Shown here: piece after piece, positions 8,201-25,700 of the stretch
Layout of the letters: each line of letters starts with the position of its first letter
Position numbering within the stretch: the first letter of the stretch is position 1
Origin: Magallana gigas
Lineage: Eukaryota
Length of the DNA: 64,000 nucleotides
Direction: 5' to 3'
Assembly: GCF_963853765.1 (NCBI RefSeq)
Contig: NC_088858.1
Location: 41,540,001 to 41,604,000, forward strand
Notes under the pieces: model-generated
The model's input: the letters and a program-made list of their open reading frames with translations, nothing else
Database searches by the model: none
What the model was told of the DNA's origin: nothing
Position numbers and translations under genes: made by a program

Positions 8201-11200
8201 TCAAACCCATAAAATTACTCGTAGATAGTTTTCAAAATGTGTTTCTTTTAGATGTTGACTGTTATTTTTTCTTGAATCTTCACACTTTCCTACAATACAG
8301 TGAATGAAAGAGCAATGTTTTTAAGCCTTATTGTGCACAAGCAATTTAATCAAATTGGAAAAAACAGTCATATTATGGTGTGACCAGTGGTGAAAGTCTT
8401 ATATATTTGGTTGATGTACAAATCAACATAAGATGAATTTTAAATTAAAAGTTGATCGAAAACTTAAATCAATAATCAGGGCTGTAGCAACTCTCAGTCA
8501 GCTATGAAAATTGGTACACAGTTTTTGTCATAAATTTTTGTAAAGTACATGTACCGGTACATGTACATATTAAAAAAAAATATCAATACGATTTAATAAC
8601 ATAATTTTTATAATTGCTTTAAGACTGATGATTGACACTACTCGGCATCATTGCTCTTTAGTACATTGTATGACACTGATATTAGTAGAAATGTTCACAC
8701 TAGATCAGCTACTAGTAGAGCATATGTGTGTGTTTTCTTTTGTTTCACCCTATACCTGACATTTCTTGCAGACAAACGTCACTATCTTCCTGAGAAAACG
8801 GTTAAAAAATACATGTTACAACTTTGTAAATCAGTTGACCATTGCCATAGGTATGTACAGGTAGAAATGGCTGCATCAAAAGTGACTGCTTTATCATTGT
8901 TTTGATGGTTTAAATAATGACCAAATTGATTGAATGAAAAAAAGGATTAAATCCTGTCTAGCATGTTTTGAGAGTTTGAATTATTATTAAAAATTTGTTT
9001 ATTTGTGCAACCAGTCGACCTGTTTGTTATAATTAACTTATTATAATGTGTGGCAATTAAATGTGACAATGATTATTTTTAGAGCAAGTACATTTGTTCA
9101 TTAAACAAAATAATATTATAATTTCTGTGCATTTAATATAACATGTGTATTATTAATGCTTGCCTACTGGCACTGTACCAGTTATCGGCTAAAATTTAAC
9201 GGTTTCTTTTCATAATTCCTTATTTCTTGATATTTTTGGATAAAACTTGACTCACTTTAAAAAGTGGACTCCTTATTTATCAATCTGTTAGTTTATATCA
9301 TTATTTAGAACCCAAAACATCTTGTTTTGTGCTTTTATGCACGCCCCGAATTTGCCAAGTTCTTACGATTTACTGTACCAGTTATCGGCTTCGTGATAAT
9401 AACATAGTAAAAATCCGTGTTCATGTTGATTTTATACTCTGCACCAAATTGTATACTACTCAATACATAATTGTGCAATCAGGCTTTCAATTGCGCTACG
9501 AATCTCTTGAAAATTCGTGAATTCCTTTTGTTTATACATGTTAAATGTATTGATTTTATATGTCAAATCAAAGAAGGGATATAATAACGTATCACAAAGA
9601 GGTAATATTCTATTTTTAACTTATTACGTCACTTCCCCCACTGCTGAAAGTGCAAAGATGTAAAATCAGCGGTAAACAATGATCTTTTAAGCTCATTATA
9701 AAACATATTCAAGAAAGTTTTCAAGCAAACTTACTTTTCTTTATTCGAAAAAGACGACTGAATTAAAAAATCTTGGATTGTCGCGTGCTATAAACCCGAA
9801 CACTCAGTTTAGCCGATAACTGGTCTTAGCCGATAACTGGTACAGTACCAGTAGTACATAGAACTTTCCTATATAGTTTCATTTTGTTTTTCTCCTTTTT
9901 TAAAACTTATTAAACTGCATGCAAAAATGGAAATTCTCAACATAGGATAAAACGTTACCACCACTAATATTTTATACAATAAAAAATCTAGAATTACATA
10001 GATTTGAACTTATATTCAGAAATCAAAATGTATATTTAAGAATTAAATGAATTTTTTGTTTTTGAAATACTTACTGCAAATACTTACTGCATGATTGATC
10101 TTCTTCTATGTAGGAATGGAATATTTCACAGGGATGTCAAGCCAGAAAATATCTTAATAAGGGTAGGTTTCTCATCTCTTGAAAAAAAATATTATTGGTA
10201 GGTTTATCATCTCTTACAAAAATTGTTACTAGTTTTAGATTTAGTCACATGACAATGATCATATCCTTAGTGATTAAGGTTCAGTACATTTTGAATTCAT
10301 TTGTTGCATATAATCACAGTTAAAAACTAGGTTATTTATAGAAATCAGTTCTACCAAACAATATACCAATAGTTATAATTTTATTTTGATTTCTTTTTTT
10401 CAGGAAGATGTTCTGAAACTTGCAGATTTTGGTTCTTGTCGAAGTGTCTACTCAAAACAGCCTTATACTGAGTATATCTCAACTCGATGGTCAGTATTCT
10501 GCACTCTGCACTTTAATTCACTAATTCTTTAAAAAACACTTTGATCAGGATATGTTTAGTTTACAAAAACAGTATTTTATTGAATGGGATTAGGCAGCAA
10601 ACAGTCAGCCTCTTTTAGCCCTTTCCCTAATATGAGCTATTTACATTCTATTTGACCTAATTGATTTGACATTGACCTTTTAGGAACCTCCATAACAGGT
10701 GTTTTGCAATAAATCAGCTTGCACATTCAGTGCAGCAACCAGTCATTGACAAGTGCAAATATGTCGTAAATCTGTCTGTTTCAAAACTATCATATTGGTT
10801 TTAATGTGGAATTCATGAAATAGCGCTGTTAAGTTCTTATCGACCTGTTACAAAGTGGCAGTAGCTTTATTTGACTTGCCTGCAGATGTTAGTTTTAGGG
10901 AAAATCCAATGCATATTGATCATGCCTATTTTAGGTTAAAATGCAAACAGAGAATATTTACATATTTTTTCTTTCAAATTTTACTTACATGAACCAAACA
11001 AATACATATTAAGATAAACATTCAGATATGGCCCCTGGTAATTACCTTTCACTTCCATGCAGATAGTATATATAAATTATATAAGAATTCTAGGTATGGG
11101 AGATGTTATTTAGTAAGCCACAAAGTATTCACATAAAATACATACTGTTGAAATATTATCAGTATTCAAATAATTTTCTTATATGAACAGCTGTGTTTTC

Positions 11201-11343: not shown

Positions 11344-14300
11344 TGTATAGAATTGTTTTGTTGTAAGAGTCTGGGCCGGGATTCATAAAGATTCTAAGAT
11401 TTTTCTTAAAAAATGCACTTAAGTGTTAAATAAATTCTTAGTTAAGAAAAAAACTTAAGAACAAATTCATAAAAATACTAAACATAATTCTTAACTGAGT
11501 ATAAACTTAAGAAATTCATGTACTTAAGTCAAAGCTCCATGACAACACTTACAAATTCCCGGAATTTTCCTTGCCTACAAACGCGCTCTTTTGTGAAAGA
11601 GGTAAAAAAGTTAAGACTGTGACGTGAATTAGCAGACGGGAAAAAGTCAAAACAATGGATTCGCAGACGAAAAGAAAACCCAATTGGAACGCCGATGAAA
11701 CGCTAGCACTAACAAACCTAGTCGATGAAAATAAGCAGATATTGAGGGGGAAATTAGGACCATCGCTGACTTCAGAAATGAAAAGCCGGATGTGGCGAAA
11801 CATTGCAGTTTCATTGACTGCCATGGGTGTTGGGCCCGGTAGAACCGCTGCAGAGGTTGAGAAGAAATGGCACAACATTTTCTCTAAATCTAAATCAGAG
11901 ATATCTGATCACAGAAGAGCTACGACTGGAACAGGTTTGTTATTACGCACAAAATTGAGCTTGTTTTCAAAATTTAAGTTCGCATACAAATTGCATGATA
12001 CAAAGATACACATTTATTTCGTTTCAGTAATGACAATTGAAGGATACAATGTAGGCCTATACTTATATATAATTTGATTCACTGTATAATAAAAAAGACT
12101 AATCAATTTAATATTTCCTGTACAATACAAAATTTGCCGCGAAAGGATTTGTATAAACTCCGATAGAATTCATTTGCTATAACCGAGGAAATGTGGATCG
12201 CCAAATTTGAACAATTCACATTTTCGGTGTGTTATTCATTATCATGTTCAGCTAAACCACAAATGAGAAGTTGTATGAGGCCTTGTGTTAAACAATGTTG
12301 TTTTTTAATGCAAAAGCAATGGAAATTAAATTGTAAACAATTAACACTGAAAAAAATACATGCACCGACCTAAGGGGGGGGGGGGGGGGGGGGGTCATTG
12401 GCGTTTTGACCCCCAACCCCGGGAAATTTATTTAAAATCAAGTTGTAACTATGCCTTGGATCCCCTCACAATGTCAAACCTTGGAAAACCCTCCTTCCAT
12501 GGAAAAATATGGACATTAGGAATTTAATAAAATTAATATGAATTTTCTGCCGCGGGGGGGGGGGGGCTTCCACAGACCCTATTTAGATCTGCGCATGCAC
12601 ACATGAAAATATAATACTTGGATTTCAATTATGATTATAAATACCACATGTATAAATGTAATAAAGAAATTATGATCACAATTAGATGGAATCGCAATAT
12701 ATTTTGAATTTTTGTATAATCTTTTACTGTTATTTTGCATATCAAATTATGTTGCTGTGTACTATTCTCAATTGATTAATTGATGATTGAAGGTGGTGGT
12801 CCTCCCCAAAAGACACTCAGCACAATCGCCATGGCTGTTTCAAATGTGGTGGGGGAAAACAACACTTGCCTGTCTGGTATTCCCGGAGGTTTGGACACCT
12901 CTATCATTCAGTTGGGCGGACTTATTGGAGAAGAGCCAGTGTAAGAATATATACACTAGTATGCGTGTGTGACTAAACAATCTCATTTAAAATTACTGGT
13001 ATCAAGAATTCATAGAAAAAGGTATATATAAAGAAAAATAAGTAACTTGAGCTGTATGAACAAAACTGATGAAATTTATTGAGATAGGCATATTTAATGA
13101 CTTTTCATTGATATCAATCATTCCAAGTATGAAATAAAATATTTATAAAAAAATGTTTTTGCAAAGATCATAAAATCATAAAACTCCAAATATGGTAACA
13201 TCTACAGACAAACAAAATTTTAATCTTCACATTTTTTGCAGTGGGATCAATATTATTGAGGGACCACCAGATACAGTTCCCCACATTCTGGACCCAGAAT
13301 CACCTCCGCCGCCATCTCCATCTTCATGGATGCTGCCATTAAGCAGAGGTCGCACCAACTGCTCTAATCCTAAAAGGAAAATTGAGGAACTGACTTTGAA
13401 GAAGCTAGAATTAGAAGTTCAGTATCTAGAGTTGAAAATCAAAAAGCTGAAGAAAGAGGAATGAAAAAAAACTATGTCCATTCAATCCATTAGTAAAACA
13501 GAAATTAATTTATATAAATAATGAAGTAAAATGTCAATAGAAATGTAAAGTTAAACTTAAAAGAAATAGTATTTATGACAAATTTTAGAGATTCAGTAGT
13601 TAAATCAATGAATTTAGTAAGAAAGACTTGAAATATGTGCACCTATGATGATCATCTACATGTACAATTAGTGATTTTTATGTGATATTTTATGAAATTT
13701 ATTTTATTAATAATACAAATGTTGTTGTTGTTGTTGCTGTTAATGTTATTTAAAAAAAAACCTGAATATTTTAAAACATGTATGTTTGTTTTCACTCAAA
13801 TGCCTACCAGTCAAAAGTGAGTTTCAGCGAACAGCTGTCTGTAACGAATTCCATCATTCTGTTGACCATTCTGTACATTCAGCCCATCATTCTGCTGATT
13901 GTCATCCAGGTCACCATCCAGGGGGCATGGTATCTGTCTGTCTTTGCAGATATTGTGTAAGATGCAACAAGCAACAATTACTTGGCAAGTCTTGTCTGGG
14001 GATAATCTAACCTCTCCATGCAGAACGTGGAATCTTCTCTTAAGCTGTCCTATGCCTCTCTCCACAATACTTCTTGTCTTTTTATGAGCCCTATAAAATA
14101 CCCTTAATAAATCAATTCTTTCACATGTCTTTGAAATTTAAAATAAAAAATTATGCATATTTTTTAATCATAAAAATTATCAAATTCCATAGATAAGAAC
14201 ACTAATTAACAGATCCCTATTAAGCAGCTCAATGATACTACTTGGCAGATAAATGCCTAAGAATTACTGTAAGCTTCTTTCTGCTTACTTCTATACACAT

Positions 14301-17300
14301 GTCCAGTAAAAGCTATAGCATCAGCAGCAAGGTGCATTTTAAATTCAGAACATGTTGATGCACTTTATTTCTGATAAATCTCAGCATATAAAAGATTTGG
14401 AATTATATAATTAATATGAACCCTTGACAGATGAAGTGAATGGTCTCACACAGATTAAATGATTCTTTTATGAAATTGTCAAATTTAAAATAATACTTCT
14501 GTAAAATATTCCCCAGCAAGGATTATAATTACCATGTACATATGTTGCTTTTCAATTTATAATTATGATATAAGTATATGACTACTTATATAGGCATATA
14601 ATTACATGTATATGTGTGGATATTTTTAGATATTGAAATGATATACTAGGGAAAATAATTCTTAATGGTTCAAAAATCAAATTAACCAAATGATATTACT
14701 CCCCCCCCCCCCCATTAAAAAAAATATAAATGGGAAATTTCCTAAATTGATAGAGAGAGATAGTTTAAACAGTAATGTAGAACTAGCAGCAAAATGCCAT
14801 ATCATCCCGTTATATTCTGTACAGTGACAGTTTTGAATGAAATAAAATTTTGGTGGAATGAAATTCATTGATCCGCCCCATGTTATGTATATATTTAGCA
14901 CTGCTGTCTCCAGAGGGCGCTTATCAGGAAAACGAAAGTAGAACGGTCATGGCCATTTTTTCGCTGCTTTTTTCGTGTTGGTTGTATCATGTATGGACAG
15001 GGTGGATGTACCGGTATATATTAGACATTACTTAGCTTTTACCTGACAGAGAATTATGTGAAATGGGAAACGTACCTGTTATAGTTTGTTTGACAACCTT
15101 GGTTTGGTCGCAAAAATGGAGTTAGGAGCCATCTCTTTGAACAGGTTGGGACCAATCGCCCAAATGGGATAGAATATCCCAAACGGGTTATTATGACCCA
15201 AACGAGCTATATATAGATATCCCGCACGGGCTACATAACGCGGTTTTTTTTTCTGCAAGAAAAAGAAGACTTGTTTCCGCAAGATGTCGAGTACATTGGT
15301 AAGGAAATTGAGTCATTATCTGTAGATTGAGTTAAATTCTACGTATTTTTCATCCCTATTCACTTCATAAACTTATTTACTAAAACATGAGTCAGTCCTT
15401 TTGCACGGTGACCTTAACTGTTTTTCTTTAAACTTACCTTTATGTTCTAATATCAACAAAAGTTGAAGTAATTTTCTTCGACACTAACACATGGAAGACA
15501 TATTGAAACAATAACTTCTCGCGAGATCAAATTATCCAATCAGAAAATGGCTATGATCTTTGGTGTGGTTGAAATTTAGAGCTTATTGTATGGAGCACCA
15601 GAAGGACTAAAATAAAATATTAATTTATAAGGAAAATGAAATGCGCCAATAACATTAGATTTCGTTCTATATTATAAAATATGACGTTAATATATTAAAT
15701 TTGCATTGAAATTTTTTAACAGAGAAAAAATGGCAGAAGCGGAAAAGTTTCTAATCTAACTCTTGGGAAGAACAGGAGACAGGTTCCATCCCAAGTTGGA
15801 TCAAGGAGCGTTAGCCAATCATTTTTTAAGAGAAAAAACACTCTTCTAGAGAAAGTAAGAATATGTTTTATTAATTGTTTTCAATTAAATTAAATAAATA
15901 AAGTTTATATTTACAAATATACAATTTTGATTATATAATATGATGATATTATGATGTAACATAATGTGATGTTTCATTATATATATATACAATATTTACA
16001 AATAAATAAAGTTTATATTTAGTATTATTTACATATCACACTGTTTTTTTAAAATATCATACAATATATACAGATAAAAATACTACATTTGTGAAACATT
16101 TACATATTCTAATTGCAAGTTTTACAGGTGTATTTACAATTATGTGATAAGGAAAATAACATTCCAAGTAATTGTCAGCATAAAAATTGCAATATATACA
16201 TATAAAAATTTAATCATTTCGGCCCTCCGATTTTAAAACATCATGATAAAATTTAAGAATATCTGCTTTTGTCTTCGATTTAACTTTCCTCCACTCGGCA
16301 TTGATTTTCTCATTGTTTATATCCTCAAGTTCACCTTCAATTATCTTAATAATTTCGGGTTTTGTTTTATTAACAATGGATTCTGCTTTTGTCCTTTCGT
16401 CTGTGAGAACAAAAATCGGAGGAAATTTTTTTCTGTCACTGAGGCTGTGGTTGATAATAAAATTCATAAAGTCTTCGCGGTGTCGCAATGAGTTTACGTG
16501 AAACTCCGTCAATGAACGGTCCAAGGATTTCCCACTAAAAGACGTGTGACTCTTTTCTTTGAACGGCTCATTTATGTAGCCTGATTCTCTGATAGACTGT
16601 CTAAAACAATTGATTTCAAAATCAATATTGTACATGTAAGCGTATTCGGCATCAAGCTCACAAATGCATAGAGCAGCACTCAAGTTTCCTCTGACCTATA
16701 CAAAAATATGAAAAGTTTTGTAAATAAATTGTTTAAAAATAAAAAATAAAACGATTGTAAAATTATTTCATTAAATTAAACATCGCAGAAAAAAGTTAAA
16801 GAAATGACATAGTAAAAGGTAACGGAAATCGGCTTTGCCACCCCCACCCCAAGAAAAAATGGCGGCACCCCCCCCCCTTTTCAAAAACACAATTCTCAAT
16901 AATTTTGGTTCAACACACGCATTATTATGATTGGAAATGTATAATGATGTTAAGATATATATGCATTTGTATGAAAAATATACATGCATGTATCTACTTT
17001 AGGCAAAAGAGATACACGAAACCACAGGCGCAGACTGCGTCTTATACTTAAAGAGCCCTGGAGGGACAGAATATGTGTACAAGTCTGCAGGGGTGAATTT
17101 TGACTTGGTAATAAATTAATGAATACTTTATTTCATATATAAATATTTTATGTATGAACGTCATAAAAAAGAACTCAATTAATATTAAAAGAGTACTTTT
17201 ATTCCCTATGTTATAAATTTCAGGGAAAGATCAATGTTCAAGATGGACCCCAACAAAAAGAAGACGTCCCATCTACAAGCTCAATGGACCCCAGGACATC

Positions 17301-19740
17301 CCTGTCGTTGTCACCCATAAGGAGCAGGACGCGCCATACAGAGACGCAGACATCGGAGTCCTCCTTCTCCACAGTTCAAGATTCTACACTGTGTAGATTC
17401 TGTGGAGAAGGGAGGAAAGATACCAAGGCTCTCTGGATTGGGTGTTCACATGTCTCGCAGCGTGGGCGGGTGAAGCAGACATGCGAGTACTGGGTGCATG
17501 CTTTGTGCGTTGGCATTACAGCCACAACCAAAGCACCTCTGAGCAGAATTGGATGGAAATGCCCTCACCATATCATGATTGCTAAAGATAATGCTAAAGA
17601 TAAGAATAAAAAAAGTAAATGAGTTATTGGGTTTTTTTATTTCAAAATGGCTGAAGTTACCTTTTCTAGTTTGTCAATGCACCTACAAACATTTCTCCAC
17701 TTCTCCTCATCAGGCACTCCATTTTGGATCCACATCTTCGTTTTCCTGTTTTTGGCTTCTAATATAAAATCACCCCCCTCACCCTTGGCATCACTGCCAG
17801 AAACTCTGTAGGACTCATGTTCCTCAATAAACCCACGTACTTTACTTGGGCACTGAATTCGAACAAATGAGTCCCTCATATATGTCTCCATGTAAAATGG
17901 CATGTTAAGGCCAAAGAATAATGGTGAAAACTTTGTTTTAGACGCATTAATTGCTGTGGAATTGTTGCGCCTGACCCCTGCTCTAAATACATGGAGGGCA
18001 AGGCAGTATGAAAATACTACCTCAGCCATAAACTTATAATTGGGGTTTTTAACCCCAACATACCATTCATAGAAGCCACTGACAGAAGGCGAGGATGTAC
18101 TCGGATCCCTCACATATACCAACAAAAGCTCTGCAGCCATTGACTGCAGAAATATCTGAAAAATTTGCCAGCTTTTGTGGTGGTCTGCAAAATAAATGTC
18201 ATAAGATAAAAGTTGGGACAAAACTTTTTTAATATTCGTTTTTATAAAATAAAACTATTTTATTTTTACCTGTTGCGCTCATAAATGAGGCTTGTGCTTT
18301 TGGGCTATTGAAGCCTAAAAGTTTTGCAAGATCTATAAGGATCACATCCCATAGCAGGCGAAATATGGCTTTCGTCATATTGATCTCATAATGACCAAGT
18401 CCTGAAATTAATATTGTGCATTTTTATATGGCATAACGCTGTATTTATTTCTTATTGATTACTAGAAAAAATACAAAATTTCCTTGTTTTATAAAATAAT
18501 TCAAAGAACTATGTACCAGGTAACATGACAATGTCGTTGTACTTTCTACACTTCTCTATGTCGACGTTTAGTGCATGGTCGTAATTCTTTATGTGCTCCT
18601 TGAAATCTGGTTCATCCATGAACTCCATGCCACAATCCGGACAGGTAAACATGTTCTCTACAAAAATATATTACGATGTCAATTTTGATTTCGTGTGATT
18701 TTTATGTTTACACTTTTAATAAATTAATGTATTTTAATTTGCGACAAACCGATGATTCTTGATGCAAGAGTATAGGGCAGGCCATCACACCCAACCATCG
18801 TCCATTTCCTCGCCTCACCCACCTTCGCCTTCTCTCGAATGTGATCAAGAACCTAAGAGCGTATAAATTTAAAATAAATATTAACAACTGCATGTAGTGG
18901 TTGACAAATAGATTGATGAATTAACGATTCATGACTTACAAACCTTCTCAACTGCCTCGTAAGAACAGGGGTTTTCGAAACATGGTTCTCCCATGATGAC
19001 AGTTGGATTTGGTCCATCGTTAGATTTAATGAAAGAATACCTAAAAAATTTAATGATCAAATCATTGCAAATTAACAAAAATGCAATTTTATCGAATTTT
19101 AATTTTGTATAAAAAATCCGTTTATTTAATAATAAAATAATATGTACCTTTCCTCTGCTGTAATATAAGTTATATTTAGCAAATTCTTATCAATGTTGTC
19201 CAGTCCGTTGTCATCCTGATGGCTAACAATTTTCTCTAATTTGTCTCTAATGAATTCATTTCTAAACAGACAAAAAATTATAAAAATATTTATTCAGCAT
19301 ATAATTTATCATTTAATTTTAATTTGATAATAAATGCAATGTGAGTTATAATTTTACTTATATAGAACATAATGTACCTATAGTGCCGAAACGTTTCGAA
19401 GTGTATCATATCAAGATCTTTCATTTTACTAATTGTATCTCGTTTGCCATCACTAGTGTGATTCATCCACTGTCGTGGAGATAGTTCCAGAATATGTTGA
19501 ATATTGCTCTCAATGTCCGGGATAATATGTACCATGGTGGTAACGACACTGGCCTTCCCTTTGTAATTCACCTCCACCTTCCATTTCTTCTCTAAAACCT
19601 ATGGTTGCAACACAAAAAATTATGAAAATTACCTAATTTGGACAGGAATATTTTTTTTTCAATTATAAATTATATGATACTGTTTTAAAATACATGTAAA
19701 TATACGTATACGACTATATGCTAACTCAAATAACTTGTAT

Positions 19741-19790
<50 letters not shown>

Positions 19791-22700
19791 TTTAATCCAA
19801 TTATTTGCCCCAAAATCCTTAACGTTTACCGTACATATAGAATTATATGTGAATATAAGCTTATTGCAACTAAAGTTTATGTTTATTATCACCTGATTAT
19901 TGTCAAAAAATGTTACAACATCAGCGTTTTGGGGGCATTCTATGGCGTCTTTGCTCTGCTCTGAAATCCAGTTCTGAACTGTTGTGTAGGATCCCGATGG
20001 ACTGCCCTTACACCCTATCCTCAAAGCGGATTTGCTACCAGTTATGTAGTATCTAGATAACATAAATAGAGATAATGATTTATTAGAATAAATAATTAAT
20101 TATGCAAACATCACATACACAGTACTAATGTGTAGATTGAATAAAATAGGCGTAATTTGACTGCAATTATAGTCATTACGTGAATACTTGTGTGTGTGTG
20201 TGTGGCTGTATTTTAAACATACCCAAGCAGATTTTGAGAGAAAGACATTGGTGAAACAAAGGAATTGTTTCTACACCCGTAGATAGACTCTACAGTCTTT
20301 GCTAGTCTAATTTCCTCACAAGCATCGTTGCAGATCCCTTTGATGAAATTAACTATAACATGGTTTCTTTCTTGCAACCAGTCTGAAACGACACACAATT
20401 ATAATAATAAATATTTATATCATAGATAATATATAAATATATTCAATAAATAATATAACAGTGTGTATGTGTGTGTGTGTGGGGTGGGGTGGGGGTGGGG
20501 GGGGGGGGTTGGTGTGTGTGTGTGTGGGGGGGGGTGAACATGTGCGTTTATTATCTATAATTTATTTATTTACCCTTCAGATTGAACGTTTCCAAGTAAT
20601 CTACATCTTTATACTGGCTCCCAGAAGTCACAGTATCCTCGTAAACTGCTTTGGTTTGTGTTTTTCCTAAAGTATGAAATATTTATTCAATACCAATGCA
20701 TAATTGCCTCCTTAAAATATATACACAGAGTTAGTTAATTGGTTTTTCTTTGAAATAATAAAATTTCATTTCGTCGTTGCTTGTAAAATATTACAGGTGT
20801 TAGTTAGAGGATATATTACCTAAAGCGTATGATAAGGAAGACAGCTGATCGCTTGTTAGTCTATTATTGGAAACTGCCCCCAGGAACTCTTCAAAATACT
20901 CCAAAATACTGAACTTCTTCTTTTTAGCCGCCTCCTCAGTCTCATCTTCGTGCTGAAGACACTGCTCAGCAAATTTTACACACAGAGAACACAAAAAGGT
21001 AGAATGTGGGAATATAAATTCCCTTTTCAACAAAAAGTTAACGACTTTAACTTTAATTTTTTTGTCGGATATTCTCTGAACAATCTCCTCGTCGTCTGGG
21101 AATAGGGTTGAACAGTATACATGCTGTTTGCAACTGCATTTGCGTTTAGGGGGCATATCTACATAAAAAATCATTAGATAAGATAAAGGTAAATATAAGC
21201 CTCAAAAATTTGTTTCACATAAATGAACATGTGTAACTAATTGTGTATTCAATCTTATTTGTTAATCTTATAAACATAATTTACTTTATATCAGCAATAA
21301 ATATTGCGGACCAGAATGCACCAGTATCAAATTCACTGGGTACCGTTTAATAACTCCAAACTTGCACATAATATCATCTTGATGAATTACATTTTTAAAA
21401 TCACGGATAAATTGCAGTAAACATGCTCATAGGGATTTAATGACTTTGGCAATATGTTTAGACAAATTAACACTAAGAACATTATTTTTCATATTTACAT
21501 AGGTAACGTAATATAATGATGCATGTATGTTAACCTTCATCACTTTTTATTCATTTGTGACATAGATTTTTAAACGTTTATACAACTTTCAAACAACATT
21601 TCCGTAAATTTTTCAATACGTTTCCTCAAAAACATATATACAAGAGTTTTAATAAAATTATTTAATAATTCTCATTATGGCGCACCATACATTCTATTTG
21701 AAAATATGACCTATTTTATAAAACACTCTTCAATTGGACAGTTAGTGATCACATGATCATGCAAGCTTTTCAAAATGGCGGAATGAAGTCGTGTTTTTCA
21801 GCAGGTAAGAGTAATTATGGCTTAACTGAAGTTTAAATAGCTTTAACAAGGAAAATGTAATCGTAAATATAAAAGAGACTTACTTTTCACCTTATGTTCT
21901 CGCACTTCCGCATCAGTTAAGGCTATGAGGACCGAATTTTCAGCTGCCTTTTATATACTTGGGCCCCTATGAGCAATCCAGATCCCTCGCAAAGAAGCGT
22001 ATTTTGGAAATTCTCGTGCAAAATATACCGCCAAATTTTATGTAGCCTGTTTGGGATATCTATATATAGCTCGTTTGGGTCATAATAACCCGTTTGGGAT
22101 ATTCTATCCCATTTGGGCGATTGGTCCCAACCTGTTGAAGGATACCCGCTGTCTCCTAGCAAATGCGTATGCACAGGGATTTTGTTTTGGTCAAACAATG
22201 ACTTGAGTCCACTCTCATTCAAGATCCTAGCGTCATGTGTTGAGCCTGGCCATTTCGCTACGACATCAATTATCTTGTGGAATGGATCAAAGACGACCTG
22301 TGTGTTGATGCTGTGGTAATGATGTCTGTTGACATATTCGTTTTCGTATTGAGAAGGAGCGATAATTTGTACATGTGTGCCATCGATGGCCCCAACAATT
22401 CCAGGAAACCCAGCGATTTTGAAAAACTCTTCTTGGTTTTTGCGAATTTCCTGAAGATTTAGTGGAAATTTAATAAACTGAGCACAAATTCGTGGAGAAG
22501 AGAGACATCTTAGAGTTGCAGTAATTGACCTAGAAACAGTAGGCTGCGAGACACCCATGTCGTCTCCATTGCACAACTGCATTTTACCGGTAGCTAAAAA
22601 TCTAAGTGTTAATAAAATTTTCTGCAGTGGAGAAAGTGCACAGTTTCTGCGTGAACCACTCATAAGTTCGTTACCAATCAACCCCTCTAGAAAACGGATA

Positions 22701-25700
22701 CCGGCTGAATCAAATCTGTACCTCTCAACAAGTTCAGCATCACTGTACTCTACCAAACAGTCTTTTCTTTTGCGAAAACATCTTCTGTGTGCTCCGATGG
22801 CAGCCATTTTGATTTTGAACTTAAGTTTTTCTTAGAACTTTAAGACACCTCAAGAGGACTCTTAGATTTAAGTATTGCTTAAGATTTTTCTTAGGCATAA
22901 GTTGTTTTATGAATAAAACTTAAGTTTAAAACAAATTCTTAGCGTGACTTAAGTATTTTTTATGAGTTTAAGTATTTTCTTACACTTAAGTGCTGTTAAA
23001 GTATCTTTATGAATCCCAGCCCTGATCTTTTAGTGTTGTTTTGAAGGTATTGTTATAAAAGCTTGACCCTCTAGTGTTTTATTAATAAGGTGTAAGTGTT
23101 TAACTCCCTAGTGTTGTGTTGTTGCGAAAGATATAAGAGACTGACCCTCAAAAGTTCTTTTGTAGGTATTGCTTTAAGAGTATGATCAGCTAGTGTTGTA
23201 TTGTAGGTATAGCTATAAGAGCTGTAAGAGTTTGACCTTTTAGTTGTATGTCTGACCATATGTTGTGATGTGTTGTAGCCAAAGGTTTAAATTTTTCAAC
23301 TTATGTTATGCTGTAGGTATCGGGCTCCGGAGTGTCTACTCACTGATGGGTATTATACCTACAAGATGGACATATGGAGTGTGGGCTGTGTCTTCTTTGA
23401 AATCCTTAGGTAAGTTACAAATATCAATCTAACTAAAATCAGATCTCTCTCAATGTCCTTAAGTTTTCGATATGTCTACAGAATATATCCAGAGGAGGAG
23501 ATTGAAGATCTTTTTTTTTCTTTAAAATTGTTCTAGACATACTGCTTTATGCAGATTAATATTTGTAAAATATTCATTTCAACAAAATGTTCTAGCCCTG
23601 CAACAACAAATCCTGCAGCATCAAATCTGCAAATGCAATTTTATGTGAATGCATTTTCTTCCTTACGTAAAGAATACTTTGCACAAAAACGTGTGAAATA
23701 TTTCATCAAGATCAATTGAATGCGAAATACATGTATTTGCATGTAAATAAAATCAGAAGATGATACTGTAAAATATTTTTTTGGTATCAATATTTTGCTT
23801 TGGATGTTAATTTAATGACTTCCAATCTTACTGTAAAAGTTATTCTGGTAGGTACTGGGTACTGTGTATATTAAATTGTTTCATACGTGTACTTTGTTTC
23901 TTTCAGTCTTCACCCTCTTTTCCCTGGTTCAAATGAAGTTGATCAGATTGCTAAGATACATGACATAATGGGTACTCCAGACTCCAGTGTTCTAGATAAA
24001 CTCAAAAAGTGAGTTCTTTTGTAGCTGTTAAATTCATTCATTCTTTTACTCAATATTTCAATCCTCATTACTGGCATGTTACCTCTGATTATTGGTGCAC
24101 AAAAGTTAAGTTTCTTCCTATTTCTTTTTTATCCAATTTACCCACATAAAATGTTATGGGCAAATATAAATCTTTTGCAATAAGGTACATTTTTCTTTTT
24201 TATATGTTAGAGGGAGAGAATTGTGTACATAAAAAAGATTATGTCTTAAATGTCAGAATGATTGGTCTTAGAAATCTTTACAATGAATGATAGATCTAAA
24301 TTGTTTGAGTTTTGCCCTGCTTCCGTGTAAAAAGTATAGTGTAAACTATACGTTTAGCCAAAATAAAATTATTTATTGGAATTGCCTATCCCCTTATTGA
24401 AATACATGTACCCCCACTTTTTTCAGGGAGATTTTTATTTTTTACCAATTTTCAATTAGTCAAACTACAAGTTTGAAAAATTAAAAAAAAAGTTCCCTCC
24501 CTCCCTCCTGGGCGTAAAAACCTCCAGATGGCAATTCCACACGAACATTTTTTAAGGATGTCCAATTGTAAGTTGTTATGTTATTTGTCATGCAGATCAA
24601 GGGGAATGAATTTCAATTTCCCCCAGAAGAAGGGTACGGGTATCGAACGTCTCCTCCCTCACTGTACGCAGGAGGCCATCGAACTTATTTATCAAATGTG
24701 CACTTACGACCCTGATGAGAGAATCACAGCAAAGCAAGCCATACGACACCCGTACTTCAAAGATCTCAGGTCAGTGTTAAAAACTGTAAAAAGTAGATTC
24801 AGCTTCTTTCTTCTCCCTTTTTTTTTAAAGCTTTTTTTTAGAAAACAGGAAAATGTTCAGTTGGGGTAATTTTCACTCAAATAAAAGAGGAAAAAGTACA
24901 TTAATTTGCTTTATTATTCTCTCACATTCTGAAAACTAAGTAATTTATTTGCATATCATGGCATTTGACATATGTTCTGAAAAAGTGAAGTTATGTCAAA
25001 GAAACAATGTTTATGCAGTTTTTTAAATTTTTTATCATCTTTAACAATTTTACACAGAAAAACCCATCCTTACTGTTGAAATTACAAGATTGTGTTAAAA
25101 CAATAAATGAATATATTTTTTATAGTCAACAATTTTTCTTTAAAATTTTTAACAAAATGTATATAAAGAATCAAATTAATATCAACATAATGCTTTGATT
25201 AGCATCACTATATTTCATAGGCATTGAATTTAAAAATACATGTTCTGTTATTCTATGAAATGCAACTTTAATTAATATGTTTAATCAGGGCAACAAAACA
25301 ATCAAAGCAAAGGTAGTATGGCAGATTGCACTATCAATTTTCCTTGTTGTTTTTTTTTTCTTGTGATAATATAATATTGATATATGAATTAGAAACTTAG
25401 ATATGTGTAATCCAGACATAGAAAAGGCAGATTCCATCTTGAATTTGCATATTTGACGTCTTGATGATGTCAGAGCAAGGATTGACATTAACCTTTGTAG
25501 ATTTAGAAACCTGCAAAGTTGACTGACGTAGATATTCTATTCAGTGGGAAGGGTTAATTTTGGGATATACTCAATTGACTCCAAGCCAGCATGCCTATTA
25601 GTTTCATAAATGTAAACTATTCAACTGTGCCTGTAGTCTAATTACTATTTCTACCTGAATTTGAAGCCTGTGTGACTCATCCAGTTAGAGGAATGCGCTT

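Follow-up and report, generated by a model that had tools for sequence, protein, structure and literature searches.

To which superfamily of DNA transposons does an element belong whose transposase looks related to Academ enzymes but whose ends and target-site duplication (TSD) differ from those of Academ? The question is posed by a 6,993-bp DNA transposon at positions 15142-22134 of a 64,000-nucleotide stretch of the Magallana gigas genome (assembly GCF_963853765.1, contig NC_088858.1, forward-strand positions 41,540,001 to 41,604,000), referred to here in its whole length as the window, which consists of AT-rich eukaryotic DNA. TSD length serves as a superfamily marker, and Academ is, to our knowledge, among the least characterized eukaryotic DNA transposon superfamilies, with no member studied biochemically. 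A preliminary description of the locus had called the transposase Academ-like and held that the combination of features fits no superfamily that could be named with confidence. Our analysis favors an autonomous cut-and-paste DNA transposon that is probably related to Academ and yet part of a separate lineage, a diverged sister of the helicase-riding DUF6589 (AcademH type) transposases; it is set apart from Academ and Chapaev by comparison with descriptions in the literature. The traits that we think reasonably likely to mark such a lineage are CAG...CTG ends, a 5-bp TSD, the absence of an XPG nuclease or helicase, a companion gene of MADS type or with a PHD finger, and a Chapa (RAG1 N-terminal) zinc domain confined to one clade.

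The limits of the element and the state of its host sequence are as follows.

15137-15141, no strand: left TSD, TTGAA, an identical 5-mer on both sides
15142-22134, minus strand: whole transposon, its end bases identical in three other full genomic copies (97-100% identity)
15142-15238, plus strand: left terminal inverted repeat, 97 nt, starting CAGGTTGGGACC, 94/97 against the right end
22038-22134, minus strand: right terminal inverted repeat, pairing with the left end, its plus-strand end CCTG
22135-22139, no strand: right TSD, TTGAA, the same as the left
22135-22807, minus strand: host Harbinger transposase exon, upstream part (DDE_Tnp_4, 69 bits)
13811-15141, minus strand: remainder of the host Harbinger gene, with the exon continuing from 15141 to about 15071, an intron of about 1 kb and a last exon at about 14089-13811 (DDE_Tnp_4, 43 bits in the last exon)

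The left end begins CAGGTTGGGACC at 15142 and the right end closes with GGTCCCAACCTG at 22134, the reverse complement of the left; the inverted ends differ at three of 97 nt, and their outermost 82 nt are identical. Five base pairs is the sole length at which the flanks match. The element sits within a Harbinger transposase exon; the host pieces on its two sides both match the Pfam family DDE_Tnp_4, and when the element and one TTGAA are removed the host reads ...GDSGYP joined to SKRWLLTPF... in a single frame. What the preliminary description said of the termini (CAGG..CCTG), of the duplicated TTGAA and of the restoration of the Harbinger frame is therefore confirmed on all three counts. The upstream host open reading frame (ORF) stays open over 294 codons, and the host gene has its own intron of about 1 kb.

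Genome searches covered the 564-Mb oyster genome, and TSDs were read from 14 end pairs there and from one foreign element (L051, described below). All 15 pairs have an exact 5-bp duplication, and none of them is compatible with another length, so that tabulation of the copies upholds the 5-bp TSD first proposed from the window alone and yields no differing length. Among the 14 pairs within the genome, TTGAA was found three times, TTCAA and TTTAA twice each, and TTAAA, TTATA, TCTAT, TTTAT, ATTAA, ATTGA and TGTAA once each. Counted by position, T occurs in 12 of the 14 at the first and second places and A in 12 at the fourth and fifth, with any base in the middle; the preferred target, as the consensus of these pairs, is TTNAA.

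Four full copies, including that of the window, are present in the genome at 97-100% identity, together with one decayed copy of 37 kb and numerous short ones that have only the ends in common. For the terminal 16-mer the genome count is 322, against 11 for a reversed control, and many of its occurrences form pairs spaced 300-1,100 bp apart, which points to a sizeable progeny of MITEs (miniature inverted-repeat transposable elements) derived from the autonomous element, copies of 375-409 bp among them. Between 55 and 76% of sampled words from the gene stretch are present in six RNA runs, which suggests that this stretch is transcribed; the sampled words also span introns and the gene on the opposite strand. 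Judged from its sequence, the element is intact, recently active and autonomous. One of the full copies (C1:4475772-4484462; L004 and L005), 99-100% identical, has later taken up an insert, about 1.7 kb long, close to element position 935.

The transposase gene lies on the minus strand of the element and is predicted to comprise 12 exons.

20820-21156, minus strand: exon 1, start codon at 21156, with a Cys/His region that is a reduced Chapa-type zinc domain (profile positions 19-147; donor GTAATA)
20574-20666, minus strand: exon 2 (family profile and GT-AG)
20223-20382, minus strand: exon 3 (family profile and GT-AG)
19893-20052, minus strand: exon 4, first catalytic Asp in FFDNNQ, the D at 19904-19902 and invariant in 27 relatives
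19378-19598, minus strand: exon 5 (family profile and GT-AG)
19148-19261, minus strand: exon 6, the poorest profile match (family profile and GT-AG)
18944-19040, minus strand: exon 7 (family profile and GT-AG)
18750-18852, minus strand: exon 8, second catalytic Asp in VGCDGLPY, an invariant D at 18786-18784
18517-18657, minus strand: exon 9, C2H2 finger CxxC-x12-H-x5-H at 18643-18575, about 18 residues past the second Asp (Pfam zf-C2H2)
18270-18401, minus strand: exon 10, GLGHYEINM, with G and H invariant and E and N nearly so (family profile and GT-AG)
17661-18184, minus strand: exon 11, helical insertion domain and catalytic Glu in GDFILEAKNR, the E at 17759-17757 (family profile, 238 bits)
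16210-16695, minus strand: exon 12, C-terminal domain and stop codon (family profile, 92 bits)

All introns run GT..AG with continuous phase, and the predicted coding length of 2,568 nt corresponds to 855 codons and a stop. A profile built from 27 full-length relatives maps in order onto all 12 exons; this agrees with the 855-residue, 12-exon gene proposed earlier, with the qualification that its span of 16210-21156 is the coding region alone and smaller than the element. The four motifs on which the earlier proposal leaned are likewise all present (FFDNNQ at 19910-19893, VGCDGLPY at 18795-18772, GDFILEAKNR at 17774-17745, and PGLGHYEINM straddling the junction of exons 9 and 10). Scanned exon by exon against Pfam, the window transposase matches only the C2H2 finger, in exon 9 (E 3.6e-4, 21.3 bits, under the cut-off of 25.2 bits), a motif conserved across the family. 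The introns hold an (AG)n microsatellite (19748-19785, intron 4) and a GT/poly-G tract (20463-20530, intron 2).

Relatives were sought with single exons or with proteins already in databases as queries. Exon 11 alone recovers 744 proteins at E <1e-3 among 1.8 billion representatives, including, at full length (830-1,100 residues), proteins of Crassostrea virginica, of the ark clam Tegillarca and of amphioxus; on this sequence evidence the family forms a large lineage in animals, among them molluscs and amphioxus. In the 27 full-length members the D of FDNxQ, the D of CDGxPY, the G and H of GxGHxExN and the D, E and N of DFxxExxN[KR] are invariant, and the E and N of GxGHxExN nearly so. The family finger, CxxC-x12-H-x3-5-H, lies about 17 residues past the second D. 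A word-based protein search returned six proteins for the relative P0015 and two for the alignment, with no helicase or XPG fusions among them.

The fold was approached through an AlphaFold model of another relative, P0043 (predicted local distance difference test score 87.9, predicted template modeling score 0.83), compared with known structures by VIA-align. Residues 278-860 of the model align with retroviral integrase cores at Z 9-9.7, with the Hermes hAT transposase at Z 9.2 over 281 residues and with the P element transposase at Z 8.8 over 368 residues; the model aligns with RAG1 at Z 5.0-5.4 (about 350 residues aligned) and with HzTransib at Z 5.6. The aligned RNase H range, at its widest residues 278-864, covers the family's three invariant acidic residues. 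Because this confident model aligns with integrase, Hermes and the P element, the window enzyme is predicted to be a DDE transposase of RNase H fold that includes a helical insertion domain. Hermes and the P element give the longest structural alignments and share an RNase H core broken by a helical insertion domain, but there is no sequence similarity to either, and no hAT dimerization, THAP or GTP-binding domain was found; the TSDs of hAT and P elements are, moreover, 8 bp (7-8) (PMC3014272). A Foldseek search of the Protein Data Bank (PDB) with the 1,027-residue model gave nothing significant, and the family profile searched against PDB sequences matched zinc fingers only.

The sole transposase-type Pfam match of the family is DUF6589 (PF20231), found in 14 of the 27 members at collinear positions (best 37 bits). 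The cut-off of 27 bits is passed by P0015 (37 bits) and P0043 (28.7 bits) and not by most relatives. The nearest Atlas clusters to the family are mollusc DUF6589 proteins. In the oyster genome, at least 50 of 104 DUF6589 matches adjoin a convergent Helicase_C match at a distance of 0.5-3 kb, or in a few cases as much as about 7 kb, and the pairing of a DDE transposase with a helicase is the layout of AcademH (PMC10799480, PMC10045372). On the strength of this linkage and the published layout, DUF6589 is very likely the transposase domain of Academ, the alternative being KolobokH. Further likenesses to Academ are the length of the elements (7-10 kb), a large transposase with a long stretch from the second D to the E, and abundance in bivalves. 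The family's own loci form a set separate from the helicase-linked DUF6589 loci, and no Helicase_C match lies near them anywhere in the genome. The top-scoring DUF6589 ORFs, which are intronless and about 600 residues long (e.g., C4:24116256-24117560), also have no helicase nearby.

The Academ superfamily is described as comprising AcademX, with an XPG nuclease, and AcademH, with a helicase (Kapitonov & Jurka 2010; Kojima 2020, both as cited in PMC10045372 and PMC10799480), and TSDs of 3-4 bp are given for AcademX and 9-10 bp for AcademH (PMC10045372). The window element differs from both in its 5-bp TSD, in its CAG...CTG ends where Academ has TAG, and in carrying an opposite-strand PHD/MADS-like gene in place of an XPG or helicase gene. 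Scans of the transposase exons, of the PHD ORF and of both MADS-like pieces turned up neither an XPG nor a helicase domain, in agreement with the preliminary description, and none of the five XPG_I matches in the genome lies at a copy of the element. The opposite-strand gene is represented by three pieces.

17233-17622, plus strand: exon of a second gene inside transposase intron 11, PHD finger (Pfam PHD, 26.5 bits)
15720-15856, plus strand: may be the first half of a MADS domain (SRF type) that has diverged (by-eye likeness to the MADS protein of L051)
17003-17100, plus strand: possible second half of the MADS-like domain (by eye; not significant alone)

The two genes are interleaved, with transposase exon 12 lying between the two MADS-like pieces. 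These pieces gave no significant match by Pfam, by BLASTP against the L051 MADS protein or in a genome-wide SRF-TF search. The foreign element L051 (1088-10664, 9.6 kb), whose transposase is placed by the family tree in a major clade other than that of the window enzyme, encodes on the opposite strand a clear SRF-type MADS gene (SRF-TF, 48 bits), and a second L051 copy has the same gene layout. A companion gene for a DNA-binding protein is thus clear in the L051 clade, and the PHD and MADS-like pieces suggest one in the clade of the window. L051 has 65-nt inverted ends (CAGTTC...GAACTG) and a 5-bp CCATT duplication; because CAG ends and a 5-bp TSD are seen in two well-separated clades, they look like traits of the lineage and not of a single copy. 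The inverted ends of L051 contain repeated CC(A/T)6GG-like boxes (e.g., CCAGATATGG), and an upstream ORF of 158 residues, which may be the first transposase exon, has a zf-AD match (25.6 bits, cut-off 28) and a faint RAG1_imp_bd-like signal.

Instead, the lineage of the element could be one that Repbase, Dfam or a similar catalogue already lists, under Academ or another label, with identical ends and a 5-bp TSD, in which case the element would hold nothing new. A strong expansion of Academ in bivalves has been reported, with 100 families curated (PMC10294476); the repeats of oysters have repeatedly been mined, and the family is large and easily detected. However, all 49 curated bivalve Academ consensi compared here start with TA (45 with TAG) and none with CAG, which also bears out the earlier remark that the termini are unlike those of Academ; the literature consulted on Academ gives TSDs of 3-4 and 9-10 bp only; and a literature search did not find DUF6589 named as a transposase. 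We regard prior cataloguing as doubtful.

Several points weigh against placing the element in a separate, Academ-related lineage. The preliminary label of Academ-like stands insofar as the protein is a DDE transposase whose family has DUF6589 as its sole transposase-type match, and falls short insofar as the link is indirect: the window exons, scanned singly, give no DUF6589 match, and the scores of the relatives are low and partial. KolobokH elements also carry a helicase (PMC10799480), so that the equation of DUF6589 with Academ is one that we infer. The structural Z scores of 8-9.7 are middling and pick out no superfamily, and the family tree contains no Academ, Chapaev or Transib reference sequence. 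Finally, the literature describes the Chapa domain, along with the C(2)C and H(4)H motifs, as a trait of Chapaev/Transib (PMC4411706, PMC4079192).

This last point raises the possibility of a Chapaev-type element (EnSpm/CACTA, CMC group in Repbase), with the Chapa-bearing relatives being ordinary Chapaev transposases and the DUF6589 matches a distant, unremarked similarity. RAG1_imp_bd is matched at the N-terminus of 6 of the 27 relatives (best 44 bits), including amphioxus and C. virginica proteins, and the full Chapa domain is found in a sister clade to the window protein (P0093, P0046, P0070 and P0094). The Chapa-bearing relatives show the three published motifs, H-x3-L-x3-CRxCG, D-x3-IhP-x2-FC-x2-C and W-x-p-h-x(3-6)-C-x2-C (PMC1131882), the third with F in place of W, and the domain is followed by AT-hook-like GRP/PGRG stretches, as in Chapaev-1_BF and Chapaev-1_NV. 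Kapitonov and Koonin stated that no other known transposon has this domain. The earlier verdict that the element fits no nameable superfamily is fair as far as the present tests go, but it had missed this domain and the finger, both of which point toward Chapaev/Transib and make the placement less clear than the label Academ-like suggests.

The hallmarks given for Chapaev are a 3-4-bp TSD, invariable 5'-CAC...GTG-3' ends and three transposase motifs, C(2)C, LH and H(4)H (PMC4079192); Chapaev3 is described as targeting TWA, its transposases being about 500 residues long (PMC3014272). The ends of the window element start with CA, as do those of Chapaev, and C(2)C and H(4)H follow the second Asp in this family too. 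In most relatives, however, these form one compact C2H2 finger (C(2)C-x12-H(4)H) and not separate motifs, a separate LH motif was not identified, and the window protein has H(5)H. Most of the Chapa domain is missing from the window protein, whose exon 1 keeps only C-x-C-x2-H and H-x4-C-x2-C remnants of the zinc region and has no PF12560 match. The 5-bp TSD in all 15 pairs and the CAG...CTG ends in two clades (CAGG...CCTG in the window) also depart from the Chapaev pattern, and no sequence link to CACTA was found: four Chapa-bearing members match no CACTA or RAG1-core Pfam family even at E up to 10. Taken together, these observations make a Chapaev-type element unlikely. Two ORFs of 1,021 residues elsewhere in the genome contain a Chapa domain (39.7 bits; C2:53472863-53473117 and C9:44608291-44608545) and may be true Chapaev or RAG1-like genes; since they are unmatched by the family proteins, they are no help in placing the family. 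A third genomic Chapa match (C4:21005815-21006117) lies 4.3 kb upstream of a same-strand Helicase_C match (C4:21010407-21010718).

A diverged branch of the Transib/RAG1-like superfamily is very improbable: RAG1 presumably has, like the family, a CxxC soon after the second Asp (about 18 residues past it here) and E-x2-N-K/R at the catalytic Glu, it aligns with the P0043 model over some 350 residues, and Chapa-bearing relatives share its N-terminal domain, but the structural score is about 5 against about 9 for hAT and the P element, the 27 members have no RAG1-core Pfam match and the PDB profile search no hit beyond zinc fingers, the ends are CAG and not CAC, the targets are AT-rich, and there is no RAG2-like gene in the element. 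The 5-bp TSD, a hallmark of Transib and RAG (PMC1131882, PMC8355894), is nevertheless shared.

A more far-reaching form of the separate-lineage reading can be put forward tentatively, and we hold it with clearly less confidence. The lineage would be of superfamily or deep sub-superfamily rank and would join an Academ-like DUF6589 core, a Chapa domain in one clade (perhaps the unclassified family behind Aplysia N-RAG-TP; Panchin & Moroz 2008), a Transib-like 5-bp TSD and a MADS-type companion gene instead of a nuclease or helicase. If this were true, the N-terminal domain of RAG1 would have circulated among unrelated transposase cores, which bears on how RAG1 was assembled. In any case, the presence of a Chapa domain on a core that is not Transib-like bears directly on the debate over where the N-terminal region of RAG1 came from.

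For the Academ-related element that we favor, a transposition mechanism may be proposed by analogy with other DDE transposases. The putative catalytic residues would be the D of FFDNNQ, the D of VGCDGLPY and the E of DFILEAKNR. The enzyme would bind the 97-bp inverted ends and excise the element; its two 3' ends would then be joined to target phosphates 5 bp apart, and repair of the stagger would give the 5-bp duplication. Insertion would favor bendable TTNAA sites, and the near-palindromic target suggests a symmetric dimer. The DNA-binding protein encoded on the opposite strand may help to recognize the ends. A third TSD length in an Academ-related group with a MADS/PHD gene would, if confirmed, support the idea that accessory proteins are tied to integration geometry. 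The window copy, which is complete, young and apparently transcribed, with sharp ends, MITEs and a clear TTNAA target, is a good candidate for a transposition assay.

Two further foreign sequences are less informative about TSDs. On contig L050 the sole inverted pair, 31 nt long, is weak and lacks a matching TSD, and the relative L052 has inverted ends of 85-100 nt (419-505 and 10494-10596) without matching flanks. The ends of L052 share the core GGGACCAA-CGC with those of the window element, and the two transposases are 42% identical over the exon 11 region.

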